Source: Octopus sinensis (lineage: Eukaryota). Taken from it: 64,000 bases of DNA. How positions within the stretch are numbered: the first letter of the stretch is position 1; every line of letters starts with the position of its first letter. The notes beneath the pieces were generated by a model, which searched no databases, was not told where the DNA came from, and worked only from the letters and a program-made list of their open reading frames with translations. Shown here one piece after another: positions 26,901 to 63,572 of this stretch. The DNA lies in the NCBI RefSeq assembly GCF_006345805.1, contig NC_043025.1, positions 3,472,001-3,536,000 on the forward strand, written 5' to 3'. Both the position numbers and the translations under genes were made by a program.

Positions 26901-29678
26901 AAATATACGAAGCCCAATATACCCATCATGACTACCCGTCTGATAAGGGTACACCAGGCACATGCATCACAACCATATGTGCGCGACATGGTGATCTCAT
27001 ATCAAGATAAACAGCACATGACCTTGCAGGTGGGGCCCAATTAGAATTTTCTTCAGGTTGAGTAGCCCATCCCACTCAAACGGTCCCTGAATAAGGGTTG
27101 TTTAAGGATGTTGAAAGAACCACCCATGTTTCCAGAGGTGAATTATTCAAACCCCAAAGAATCCCTCACAACACATGGCTATGATGCTCTCCCACTACTT
27201 CTGCTCGTGATCAGAGATGCACATATCGTCAGCCACTAAGGGGCATGCTCAACTGGTTAAGGTCAAACAACTGACAAGCAAATCTGTGGTATTGAGCAGA
27301 ATATTTGCTGTAGCCCATCTTTTATTCCAAGACAAAACAATGTACATGATAACACTTCCAATCAGTTAAGATCAGAAGCCATGAGAGCCACTGCCTGGTA
27401 CTGCATCAATTATTATTAATAATAATAATAATTATAATAATGATGATGATTTCCTAATGGCAAGGTAATGGATTAGGAAAAACATCAAACGGTAATATCT
27501 TACGTCTCTCTTTTGTGTTAAAATTTCTGTAGTGTTCTCTTTTTGGATTTCTCCCTTTCTAGGTTCGATAACCTAAAATACCATTCATGTATTCTAACAT
27601 TGATATAGTTAACCATATACCACCACTGCAAAGCAATACCTATTTAAGATCCTATGTCAAAATTAGAAACCATTAATCTGATGTTGTTGTTGTTATTATT
27701 ATTATAGGCAATGGCTGCTCTGTTACACTACTTCCTTTTGACATCTCTCATGTGGACGTCTGTCGAGGCTATTCATTTCTACCTAAGCATGGTTTTGGTA
27801 TTCAGAAAATATCAGGCATCTTTTATGATGAGGAGTTCCATTTTGGCCTGGGGTATGTATAACGCTTTCCTGCTTTTCTGTCTCTAACTTTATTTCTTAC
27901 ACACACACACACACACACACACACACAGACACACTCACAGACGCACACACGCACACACACACACACACACATACACAAACAAACAAACAAATAAAAACAA
28001 CCCTTTTTCGTTATTTCATTTTTGTATTTGAGAATTACTTGACGTGTAAAAAGATTCACATGAATGATTCGAACCCAGTATATCTCTCGATCTTATTTAT
28101 TTCATTGAACCAAAAATGTTGAAAAGAAAAGTTTACTTAGACGAGAATTGAACTCTGGATACTAAACTAAACCCTGCAAACCATGTCCCTTAGCATTATT
28201 TAAGTGGATGATGCTATCCATTTGGGGTTCCGTTTATTTTTCACCTTTCTGTCTGCATTAATCTCTTCTAATTTTACAAAGAGCATCGACAGTCGTATCT
28301 AGCGCAGTGCTCTATGTCCTCAATCCTCTACAACATGATCAATCTGACAATTTTTCAAAACACTTTTCCCGATTGAAATTAAAATCCCATTGCTTTAAAC
28401 AACCTCAATCTTGATTACAAATCTGACTCACAGTAAAATCCAGAAGCGCTGAACCGTGAGTGAAAACATCCCTTACTCACTATTGTACTTTAGTGCTACT
28501 TCAGAAGTGATTATGCAGACATATTCTTGAAAATGTTCTATGACTATCTTGTCAATGTATCAAACATTATATTATCCAATTTGATCTTCCAGTTTACCAG
28601 ACTGGAGAATGGGATCTAAAGAAATTTAGTTGCTATTTCTAACACATATAAGGAAGCATAGAAACTTAGGCCTCTTTTGAGAAGGGATTAAATCCATGAC
28701 AATTCAAATGTAGTCTTATTGAGTAACGTACGTAAATGTCCAGGTTGTGATAGATGAGTATATATCGTAAGTTGAAAGTGGAGTGAGATATTGAAGAAAA
28801 GTCGAGAGGAACCGATGACAACATAGACTGAGAGATCTGCTGGACTCACATCTAATGGGAAACATTCTTAGCTGATATTTCCGTTTAGGTGAAGTAAGGA
28901 GATCCGAACATAATTGATCCGAATCCATCAACAAATAATCAAATTTCTCCTTCACTCGGTCTTCTTGTATAATTTCATGTAGATTCCTCATCTTGATTTC
29001 ACAAATTATTCAGATAAGACAAGAGGTAGTGGGCCAAATATTATATTAAGTCGAAACCACTTTAAAATATGTTGTTGTCGCTGTTTCACTTCAGAGAAAT
29101 TCTGCAAATTCATAAGCAATGACGTTCTTCACTTAACTATCGCCTCTTTTCAGATATAGTTTATATTAGGTTGCATAATCCAACACGTCATTCCTTTTCT
29201 TAAATGCAGTAAAGTATTATTCCTGAAACATTAGGTTACTATTTCTAGCAGACCAATTGTCCATATATGTGTTCCCTCTTGGCAATATTTTCACTTCTGT
29301 CATAAACAAAGGAAACTGAAAATATGTTTTAGAGGTTGCCACAAAAAGAAAAGTTGTTTTAACATAACCTGAAACAAGGAAGATATCAATTAGCTAATTA
29401 ACTTAATGAGTTATGGAATAAGATATTTATTTTAACTTGATGAACATAGTGGTTGAGTCAAGAATAAAGACAGATGAATAATTTGATTATTATCAAAAAG
29501 GTAGTGGGGTAAATATTCATGATTTGGGATTGAATAGATTGGTAAATTGATGAGATGTTGAAATATCGACAAATTTATATTGATTTCTGTAAATATTGTT
29601 GTCAGGTTTTCCAGCTGTGGCTGTTCTAACTGCACTGCTAGTTAACTACACAGACGGTTACGTCAAAATTGGACAAGC
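2924..29678 (+). CDS. Adhesion GPCR (GAIN/GPS + TM1-TM4), partial; exons 2924-3082, 13757-13885, 14257-14406, 15205-15326, 20456-20576, 27708-27852, 29606-29678
   Basis: All introns are GT-AG with matching phases (0,0,0,2,0,1) and the frame stays open. GAIN motifs [20 protein letters not shown] and [18 protein letters not shown]; [26 protein letters not shown]; TM1 [19 protein letters not shown]; TM2 [16 protein letters not shown]; TM3 [21 protein letters not shown]; TM4 AWGFPAVAV. No start codon found; N-terminal exons presumably lie upstream. Confidence 0.93.
5690..6300 (-). mobile_element. Degenerate non-LTR retrotransposon RT fragment (R2/NeSL-like)
   Basis: [51 protein letters not shown] matches RT subdomains 1-2. 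Upstream [15 protein letters not shown] resembles the SAPGPDG motif. Truncated at a (TA)n tract. Confidence 0.8.
6650..6871 (-). mobile_element. tRNA-derived SINE
   Basis: Minus-strand head gtggaggcgcaatcgcccaggggttagg...gcggtttcgact has A-box and B-box-like motifs; flanked by microsatellites. Confidence 0.65.
6991..7655. repeat. Direct tandem duplication, period ~362 bp
   Basis: The ~250-bp core gtaagcatgtgtatacgtttctacg...catttacctacac appears identically at 6991 and 7353, separated by (CA)n(TA)n. Confidence 0.9.
8622..10465 (-). mobile_element. 5'-truncated Penelope-like element (GIY-YIG) with 643-bp inverted terminal arms (8622-9264 / 9751-10393)
   Basis: Minus ORF includes VIWFTPPYS, a Cys linker [40 protein letters not shown] (GIY-YIG) and CGLCDMER. 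The + arm ends [13 protein letters not shown]. Arms are near-perfect reverse complements, flanked by (TA)n. Confidence 0.92.
10301..10363 (+). ncRNA. Hammerhead-like motif with non-canonical core (CCGAAGA) in the PLE terminal repeat; mirror copy in the left arm, another at 34841-34903
   Basis: agataa-CCGAAGA-gatg...catc-t-GAAAC-tcaga-GTT-ttatct. Stems I and II pair, but U4 is C and there is one extra base before GAAA. Confidence 0.4.
10866..11275 (+). mobile_element. tRNA-derived SINE with internal (TA)/(TG) tract; related copies at 47249-47680 (+) and ~20150-20305 (-)
   Basis: Head gtgtggtaagtagcttgc...ggttc; body ccttaggcaagtgtcttctactatagcc..gtgagtggatttggtagac; tail gactgaaacaaataaaaga. 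Shared among three loci. Confidence 0.8.
12500..13110 (+). mobile_element. Cluster of three copies of a second tRNA-derived SINE family; further copies at 36435-36660 and 61476-61690
   Basis: Recurrent gagctggcagaa..gttagcac..gttctgagttcaaattccgccgaggtcgactttgcctttca.ccttcggggtcgat..aagtaccag. Confidence 0.8.
16256..17531 (+). mobile_element. Mariner (DD34D) transposon, full length, frameshifted
   Basis: TIRs cgagggacgttcaataagtaatgcc / ggcattacttattgaacgcccctcg with TA duplication on both sides. Transposase starts at ATG 16423; motifs [23 protein letters not shown] and a frameshifted [11 protein letters not shown]. Confidence 0.95.
18821..18863 (-). ncRNA. Minimal type I hammerhead ribozyme, U3-A8 core variant
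   Basis: Minus strand reads gctaca-TTGACAA-aggg(caaata)ccct-GAAAC-gc-GTC-tgtagc: perfect 6-bp stem I, 4-bp stem II, palindromic acgcgt stem III, GUC cleavage triplet. Confidence 0.75.
21251..21773 (-). mobile_element. ~520-bp non-coding retroposon-like repeat bounded by (ATT)n; copies at 26860-27408 and 33920-34420
   Basis: Three alignable copies starting gagtgag.gagcag..catgccatcaaagtgacact; each abuts (ATT)n, which is an (AAT)n tail on the minus strand. Confidence 0.8.
21850..23110 (-). mobile_element. R4/Dong-like non-LTR retrotransposon, 3' fragment A (RLE endonuclease)
   Basis: [56 protein letters not shown] (PD..D..K RLE motif), C-terminal [13 protein letters not shown], then an (AAT)n tail. 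Confidence 0.88.
23130..26663 (-). mobile_element. R4/Dong-like non-LTR retrotransposon B, 5' end present, internally deleted and frameshifted
   Basis: N-terminal [23 protein letters not shown]; [28 protein letters not shown]; zinc knuckle CRIC..ESISHI..C; [27 protein letters not shown]. The 5' end abuts (ATT)n. Confidence 0.9.
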
Positions 29679-62400: not shown

Positions 62401-63572
62401 GTACTTTACTTCTTTCCTGCTCAGATCTCTTATTACTTTGCATCATTATAAGGTGCCAGATAACGAGAGAAGGCATGATAATGTTGAAGATGAGACTGAT
62501 CGCAACAGGAGCCAGGAAAGCAGCATAGAAAGATGGTGCGGACAACCAACAGCTACAAAGAAAATAGAAAGGCAATAAAGGAAAGAAATTTGTCAAATGT
62601 TCAGTCAATAAAATGAAATATCACAGAAGTATTAAGGGGAAGAGATTTCGATCCAAATCAAAACGAAAACATTTCTCATGTTTGCCACAAATTATGTACG
62701 TTAATGAGTAGAACATATTTTTTTGTATGTTACGATATCCAGACACACAGAAACAAAGACATACACGCACACACACATACATTTATACATGCATTTACAC
62801 ACACACACACACACACACACACACACACACACACACATATATATATATATCAGCTGAACGGACGCGCACGAAAGGTAAATATATTTTTTAAAACAGTTTA
62901 AGTAGTAAGCCTAGTTGATGGCAAAGTGCATGTCATTAGTGTATATATACTATTAATTTTTCTATCAGTAATTAAAACAGCACAAAGTGAGTTGGTTCTT
63001 TACGTGAAAATCTCTTTGATATCAATTCTACCAACATTTAGTATTGCAAAATCTATCATCTTTCACTGTTACAATTCTTTCATCTTCTTTAAAATCCTCT
63101 CAACTGCTGCTCCTACTGCAGTCATTAGAAGGTGACGCCATCCCACTGTTCACCTTCTTTGTATGATCCTACTTAGTATAATGTTTGCTTACAGTAGTCT
63201 CCATACACTAAACCAAATATTAGGAGAATTATGACAGATCAGAGAACAACTACAAAATAAATAAACAAAATAAATGGCATAACTGAAATTGATTATTGGG
63301 GTTGCTTTGAAATACGCTGCCACAAGCACCGCATCATTCGCATGATGCAGAAAATATGCTACAACGTTGCTTCATCGATCTGCAGGACTTGTTTTGTGCA
63401 TAGCAGTGATACCAATTTTTATGTGCATTGTAGAGGTAGTCAATAATGAAGAGGAATGGATGAAGGAAGGTGGTGAGGTATTTTCATATTTAGCCATTAA
63501 AAGTTTTACTTTAATGTGTTTTAGAGTTGTACAGATTTTCTGGTTGCATGGAGAGACTAACTATGAGTTTCT
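59432..63572. repeat. Inverted repeat pair 59432-59955 / 63011-63572 plus local foldback 59884-60010 / 60181-60307, made of R4-like LINE remnants
   Basis: 63011-63376 is the reverse complement of 59591-59955 with one mismatch seen; the outer ~150 bp are more diverged and include a 38-bp indel. A degenerate RLE C-terminus (VVPVIIDVLVSTPKL) lies on the minus strand near 60.1 kb. Confidence 0.88.
62144..62552 (-). CDS. Adhesion GPCR terminal exon (TM5-TM7 + C-tail)
   Basis: Polypyrimidine acceptor ttctattttctttgtAG, then c-TGT TGG: CWLSAPSFYAAFLAPVAISLIFN..LFGLLFWLGLTWVFAFF..YLFTIFNTLQGMFIFVFYC..; TAA at 62144-62146. Confidence 0.93.

Follow-up and report, generated by a model that had tools for sequence, protein, structure and literature searches.

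An adhesion GPCR gene ending at an assembly gap and an orphan TM5-TM7 exon on the opposite strand in Octopus sinensis

Receptor exons on the two strands

The DNA analysed here, referred to as the window, is a 64,000-nucleotide stretch of Octopus sinensis (C29:3472001-3536000) on C29, a 17-Mb scaffold of an assembly of 2.72 Gb in 13,516 contigs. It carries, on its plus strand, exons of an adhesion G-protein coupled receptor (GPCR) gene up to the exon for transmembrane helix 4 (TM4) and, on its minus strand, an exon encoding TM5-TM7. An initial annotation of the window had taken the minus-strand exon to be the missing 3' part of the plus-strand gene. In all, 200 kb of the genome was compared, taken from round the window, from five paralogue loci, and from the inverted, near-identical counterpart of the tract that holds the plus-strand gene (C29:3325149-3370000, the "twin"). 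On this comparison, it is very probable that two unrelated things adjoin in the window, a plus-strand gene truncated at an assembly gap, with its own-strand TM5-TM7 exon missing from the assembly, and a stray exon fragment from another subfamily. The case is an ordinary one, with no split or trans-spliced gene.

The plus-strand gene is an ADGRG6-like (GPR126-like) adhesion GPCR, and its top matches among database proteins are annotated "adhesion G-protein coupled receptor G6-like" in O. sinensis, O. vulgaris, and O. bimaculoides, several of them with leucine-rich repeat (LRR) domains. Its GPS motif covers the whole Pfam profile against a cut-off of 22.5 bits (score in Table 1) and carries the HL-T/S cleavage consensus right before TM1, as expected of an adhesion GPCR. 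Further 5' exons reach 16 kb upstream of the window. The closest annotated relative, P0001, has N-terminal LRRs; its residues 255-675 are matched by exons within the window and upstream of it, and no match to residues 1-254, which include the LRR region, was found within 20 kb upstream. Apart from the twin, the nearest relative is a gene at C29:10.69 Mb, with identities of 89% in TM3, 87% in TM4, and 84% to the region of the twin's TM5-TM7 exon.

The seven-helix domain of this gene is incomplete in the window. The plus-strand exons span positions 3-142 of the 250 in the Pfam domain 7tm_2, and positions 149-250 for this gene are present only in the twin. The TM4 exon, the last before the gap, follows an ag acceptor and ends in GGACAAGC ahead of a gtaagt donor, in phase 2. 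With tblastn, no TM5-TM7 exon was found on the plus strand between 29.7 kb and a point 30 kb past the end of the window, which upholds and extends the earlier statement that none lies between 29.7 and 64 kb.

The minus-strand exon is 389 nt long. It opens at 62552 with C TGT TGG TTG directly after an ag acceptor (ag followed by CTGTTGGTTG), ends in GGCAGAA ahead of a gtaagt donor, and supplies positions 149-250 of 7tm_2 (Pfam). When the TM4 exon is joined to it, the product reads KIGQA-CWLSAPS without a stop. Reading of the sequence confirmed the exon end, phase, donor, and minus-strand acceptor given in the initial annotation, as well as its GQA-CWLS junction and the completed 7TM domain. Two other matches to CTGTTGGTTG, at 56989(-) and 60586(+), were considered and are no exon starts.

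Table 1 Features of the window, with positions counted from its first nucleotide
Feature	Position	Strand	Basis or remark
~45-kb near-identical inverted tract, part in the window	1-34512	+	BLAST against C29:3325149-3370000
Extracellular-region exon, upstream of the GAIN and GPS exons	2924-3082	+	tblastn against P0001 residues 580-633, 65% identity; boundaries by eye
GAIN-domain exon, ends NLINQ	13757-13885	+	ag acceptor, gtaatt donor; tblastn against P0001 and P0007
GPS exon	14257-14406	+	Pfam GPS 52.6 bits; splice sites read
TM1 exon	15205-15326	+	Splice sites, homology; three amino acids differ from twin
TM2 exon	20456-20576	+	Protein 100% identical to twin
TM3 / intracellular loop 2 exon	27708-27852	+	DNA 100% identical to C29:3331810-3331980(-)
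TM4 exon, last plus-strand exon before the gap	29606-29678	+	DNA 100% identical to C29:3329940-3330100(-)
(ATT/ATC)n microsatellite, end of left contig	34440-34512		Read from sequence
Assembly gap, 100 N	34513-34612		Own TM5-TM7 exon of plus-strand gene expected ~1592 bases past 34512 by collinearity with twin
Inverted copy of C29:1680651-1684000, holds left repeat arm	57734-61093		97.0% over 3371 columns, reverse
Left arm of inverted repeat	59479-59956		Pairs with right arm
Block 36 bases from the orphan exon, ~4.4 kb downstream of it in relatives	61405-62128	-	C29:2819114-2819836, 97%; C29:1668607-1669330, 96%
TM5-TM7 exon, orphan, P0007-type subfamily	62164-62552	-	Frame and splice sites intact; Pfam 7tm_2 149-250
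Right arm of inverted repeat	63011-63521		63011-63380 100% identical to C29:1681794-1682163

The assembly gap and the inverted twin

The sequence does not continue from one side of the gap to the other, the left contig stopping within (ATT)n and the right one opening in (TA)n; the gap is a scaffold join that fixes neither the distance between the contigs nor their relative orientation. The whole of the window to the left of it aligns with C29:3359701-3325149 in a single inverted BLAST block, at 99.38% identity over 34,603 columns. The block contains 73 mismatches and 27 indels, of which the largest measure 10-20 bp. Clusters of mismatches occur at 2-6 kb and at 14-16 kb, none falls at 20-26 kb or 28-34.5 kb, and the last 6.5 kb of the contig (28001-34512) is thus free of mismatches to the twin. 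The alignment ends exactly at the N run, where window position 34512 pairs with position 3325149 of the twin. The twin carries the same GAIN, GPS, and TM1-TM4 exons as the plus-strand gene, and in the TM1 exon (15205-15326 against C29:3344464-3344342) the otherwise near-identical copies differ by three amino acids.

Past the point at which the window contig stops, the twin continues. Its microsatellite, (ATT/GTT)n of ~470 bp (C29:3325210-3324740), gives way to unique sequence and, ~1.6 kb past the break, to a TM5-TM7 exon at C29:3323557-3323178(-). This exon opens with T TGT TGG CTA TCT after its ag acceptor and reads A-CWLSEHHFYATF, in phase with the TM4 donor of the window, and the junction in the twin itself runs from GGACAAGC and gt to ag and T TGT TGG CTA. 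To the right of the gap, nothing aligns collinearly with this continuation, and what does match are scattered repeats and the paralogous exon at 76%. A second copy of the 2.5 kb that follows the break in the twin, such as might sit on an unplaced contig, was not found in the 2.72-Gb assembly, where the next best match is 84%; nor does the sequence directly right of the gap have a near-identical twin, its best match being 86%.

If the plus-strand gene appears truncated, this is only because its contig stops in a microsatellite at the gap. As the contig stops in the microsatellite where the twin goes on to its own TM5-TM7 exon, the exon of the plus-strand gene would be absent from the assembly and not from its own strand. 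It may have been left unassembled or may have been collapsed onto the twin, and the splice junction expected for the complete gene would be GGACAAGC-TTGTTGGCTA. One option in the initial annotation was a convergent paralogue, with the gene's own exon hidden in the gap or beyond the window. The exon in the gap agrees with the collinearity of the twin; the convergent paralogue does not stand in the form of a complete gene, its place being taken by an orphan 3' fragment.

Upstream of the window, the near-identity to the twin goes on for another ~10.5 kb, as far as an inner end at ~C29:3461500 that pairs with 3370000, and ~92 kb lie between the two copies. Upstream of the inner end, within the same contig and with no N between, only paralogue-level matches of 79-88% to C29:3379273-3379874 remain, and what lies here is two old head-to-head paralogues that have in common a near-identical 3' part of 45 kb. 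Viewed as a possible uncollapsed haplotype, the tract has its outer end at the N gap, with 99.4% identity over 45 kb, and its inner end away from any N, where the identity drops to 79-88% in the same contig. The duplicate may have arisen by a genuine and recent inverted duplication or by gene conversion, and it may also be an assembly artefact in which the other haplotype of the twin was joined onto the paralogue. Whichever the origin of the duplicate, the truncation of the plus-strand gene is a contig end, with no biology demonstrated by it.

A comparable inverted pair is found in C14, where positions 56001-66000 and 119001-129000 are 99.42% identical over 9.4 kb. This is the same divergence as between the window and the twin, and it hints at either allelic divergence or recurrent palindromes. 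It is possible, if somewhat doubtful, that the 45-kb tract is real and forms a head-to-head palindrome of two adhesion GPCR genes, with their 3' halves kept alike by gene conversion, and that this architecture recurs across the octopus expansion of these receptors, as in the C14 pair at 99.42% and the equal-scoring pairs in C8, C27, C29, and C10946. A real palindrome would suggest concerted evolution of this cephalopod receptor family, with the orphan exon as a by-product.

Paralogues of the family are often paired in inverted orientation, the two members scoring equally and lying tens of kb from each other, for example at 63k(+)/122k(-) in C14, 1.486(+)/1.569(-) Mb in C29, 71.123(+)/71.144(-) Mb in C8, 17.6k(+)/40.3k(-) in C10946, and 17.63(+)/17.77(-) Mb in C27. 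A third copy of the 5' exon region of the receptor lies at C29:3123563-3124171(-) and matches C29:3455800-3456335 at 79-88%, as does the twin side. No match to TM3, TM4, or TM5-TM7 was found within 200 kb of this copy, which is possibly another partial gene copy.

Subfamily and phase of the minus-strand exon

The closest relatives of the minus-strand exon are not those of the plus-strand gene. Measured on its first 349 nt (62204-62552), its DNA is 97.4% identical to C29:2.814 Mb, 96.3% to C29:1.674 Mb, 94.3% to two copies in C14, and 94.0% to C1:41.03 Mb, against 73.8% to the exon of the twin. To the exon of the C29:10.69 Mb gene, it is 79% identical. At the protein level, it agrees in 119 of 126 residues with P0007, an annotated O. 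sinensis protein whose gene lies at C29:2.81 Mb, and in 73 of 126 (58%) with the exon of the twin. The TM2, TM3, and TM4 exons of the plus-strand gene are 100% identical to those of the twin, and P0007 is 65% identical to the plus-strand gene in TM3 and 46% in TM4. Joined to the minus-strand exon, the plus-strand gene would be a chimera of two subfamilies, because the exon is P0007-like while TM2-TM4 match the twin and the C29:10.69 Mb gene is the nearest relative apart from the twin. The headline of the initial annotation, that the missing TM5-TM7 exon of the gene lies on the opposite strand, is set aside on these grounds: the exon sides with another subfamily, and a same-strand exon is available in the twin.

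The exact phase match between the two exons had been offered as a sign that they form one gene. A TM4 donor in phase 2 and an acceptor followed by one base and TGT TGG (CW) are found in the twin, in the C29:2.81 Mb gene, and in both C14 genes. CWL stands one base past the acceptor in every exon copy read in frame (10/10), and in the exon of the twin likewise. The genome holds at least 40 copies of the TM5-TM7 exon, with 10 of the 40 listed lying on C29. Any TM4 exon of the family joins in frame with any TM5-TM7 exon of the family, and the phase fit is no evidence of one gene because intron position and phase are common to the family members examined. Conserved intron phase in a large, clustered family makes a stray paralogous exon beside a gap look like a perfect fit.

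The exons that should accompany the minus-strand exon in a complete gene were not found with it. Over C29:3452001-3566000, tblastn gave no GPS or TM1-TM4 match on either strand beyond the exons of the plus-strand gene itself, and the check proposed earlier for minus-strand TM1-TM4 exons beyond 64 kb thus came out empty as far as C29:3566000. Genome-wide searches, in which 18 of 18 TM4 candidates and 40 of 41 TM3 candidates were scored, found P0007-type TM3 and TM4 exons at 2.81 Mb and in C14 and none near 3.53-3.7 Mb. The intron before the TM5-TM7 exon is 2-6.4 kb long in the relatives. The last coding exon of P0007 (SSSVNEIMDKATETNI) is present at C29:2.81 Mb and 1.67 Mb; it was not found in the window because ~4.4 kb that separates two conserved blocks in those loci is lacking here. 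With neither GPS nor TM1-TM4 on the minus strand and with the terminal exon missing, the minus-strand exon is therefore a gene fragment, and it was probably left by segmental duplication. Synonymous and non-synonymous differences stand at a ratio of ~1:3 both for orphan exons and between two annotated genes, a ratio that does not separate a relic from a functional exon.

Orphan copies of the TM5-TM7 exon with open frames were also observed at C29:1673771-1674460 and C1:41031376-41031825, and no TM3 or TM4 exon lies within 10 kb upstream of either. The C29:1.67-Mb copy has kept its terminal coding exon.

Several other features of the window were noted. A short frame at 60462-60594(-) contains a tail-like match at 60549-60593(-), TNRVRSEGNEVEDQT (E = 0.046), which resembles the acidic C-terminal tails of the family and is too weak for a claim; in a second frame, at 61860-62054(-), PTEEESAEK is faintly like such acidic tails by eye only, and no claim is made for it. 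Both frames may be relics of terminal exons. The segment 61460-61650 is by eye similar to a tRNA-derived short interspersed element and falls within the block common to the 2.81-Mb and 1.67-Mb loci. A C-terminal RING finger (Pfam zf-C3HC4_3, E = 5.5e-10) is encoded by an open frame at 50435-50629(+) that ends in a stop, and an unrelated plus-strand gene right of the gap probably has its last exon here. Two mariner-type transposase remnants, ~90% identical to each other, lie in introns of the receptor gene at 16711-17295(+) and 32652-33465(+), the former matching Pfam Transposase_1 (E = 3.9e-26).

Alternative readings and comparison with known systems

Among the readings that would give the minus-strand exon a working gene, the one that survives best makes it part of a complete, functional convergent paralogue whose minus-strand TM1-TM4 exons would lie over 31 kb past the end of the window. 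The exon has the open frame, the ag acceptor, and the gtaagt donor that such a gene would have, and its ratio of non-synonymous to synonymous differences compares no less well than the one found between two annotated genes. We nonetheless consider this reading improbable, given that GPS and TM1-TM4 matches are lacking on both strands to C29:3566000, that genome-wide searches placed no P0007-type TM3 or TM4 near 3.53-3.7 Mb, that the corresponding intron in relatives is only 2-6.4 kb, and that the terminal coding exon of the relatives has been deleted here.

The remaining options of the initial annotation share an assumption, that the minus-strand exon belongs to the plus-strand gene. In the option it ranked first, the contig on the right side of the gap has the wrong orientation, and once flipped the exon at 62552 would become the TM5-TM7 exon of the plus-strand gene. 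The gap is indeed a join of unknown size and orientation, and the exon is in phase and completes 7tm_2. The ownership that this option takes for granted is contradicted by the 58% protein identity of the exon to that of the twin, set against 100% over TM2-TM4, and the phase match is family-wide. In addition, the right contig runs for at least 59 kb without a further gap, so that the flipped exon would probably come to lie far off, when the intron in relatives measures 2-6.4 kb; and the RING-finger exon, probably of another gene, sits between the TM4 exon and the orphan exon. Mis-orientation is therefore very unlikely.

An inversion between the repeats at 59479-59956 and 63011-63521, which either flipped the exon of the plus-strand gene or flips it reversibly, has in its favour that the flanking inverted repeats reported earlier are real, with arms of ~480-510 bp that are 94-99% complementary, bracket the orphan exon, and are specific to the locus. 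An assignment of the arm to a transposon family was tried and rejected, there being only three full copies in the genome. The subfamily mismatch bears on this option as on the previous one, and the surroundings of the exon account for the repeats in another way. The segment at 57.7-63.6 kb repeats, in condensed and rearranged form, the sister locus C29:1.668-1.684 Mb, at which the genome-wide searches found no TM3 or TM4 match (1.67-1.68 Mb). Its blocks 61405-62128, 62147-62837, 62837-62987, and 63011-63560 are oriented as in the sister locus, with three deletions, whereas 57734-61093, a segment of 3.4 kb to the left of the exon, is an additional copy in inverted orientation. It is this additional copy that gives rise to the inverted repeats. 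The orientation of the exon relative to its flanks is the same as in the sister locus, and no inversion of the exon is therefore needed, leaving this option, too, with a very small probability.

Inter-strand trans-splicing, which would link the plus-strand pre-mRNA to RNA from the minus strand at GGACAAGC-CTGTTGGTTG, has the in-phase fit and nothing else to speak for it, shares the assumption of ownership, and deserves next to no credence, the fit being generic, the exon being of the other subfamily, and the twin having an ordinary exon on the same strand.

The reading of a gap-truncated gene beside a stray fragment of another subfamily is not free of difficulties, which should be set against it here. 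That the window copy would reach a TM5-TM7 exon inside the gap comes from collinearity with the twin and not from sight of the exon. Among the deposited proteins of 430-1368 aa and 136-432 aa, no model is at least 90% identical to the plus-strand gene or to the twin. The 45-kb duplicate may be real or may be an artefact. The frame of the orphan exon is still open and its splice sites still fit the consensus, and to judge by these some transcript could use it.

A metazoan GPCR gene that really depended on an opposite-strand exon would have mattered, and the present case is none. The receptor cluster in the O. sinensis assembly does hold near-identical inverted duplicates and orphan exons, and gene counts for the adhesion GPCR expansion therefore depend on the duplicates being real.

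Collapsed or falsely duplicated near-identical repeats occur at contig ends in assemblies built from long reads and Hi-C. The window resembles such contig ends in having a 99.4% copy ~92 kb away, a break in a microsatellite after 6.5 kb without a mismatch, a single copy of the sequence beyond the break, and a parallel in the C14 pair at 99.42%. Unlike a leftover haplotype contig, the tract has its inner end inside a contig, where it passes to 79-88% identity. On the human Y chromosome, large palindromes are kept near-identical by gene conversion from arm to arm. The window and its twin are similar to these in their inverted arms, which are 99.4% identical and measure 45 kb or more, in the ~92-kb spacer, and in the patchy clusters of differences between long stretches of identity; they differ in being a putative palindrome, with the outer boundary hidden by the gap. 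In Drosophila, mod(mdg4) undergoes inter-strand trans-splicing, and the likeness to the window is that an opposite-strand 3' exon fits in phase, whereas in the window that exon comes from another paralogue, and the twin has a same-strand exon.

Ritschard et al. 2019 (PMC6408891) described an octopus-specific expansion of ADGRG6/GPR126-like adhesion GPCRs as "group 3", part of whose members carry leucine-rich repeats; tandem clusters are seen in some of the expanded groups of that study. The plus-strand gene, the twin, and their relatives are members of this expansion. The window departs from it in that its plus-strand gene is truncated by a gap and its minus-strand exon is a mere fragment; it is like the expansion in the combination of GPS and 7tm_2, in the G6-like best matches, and in the many clustered paralogues.

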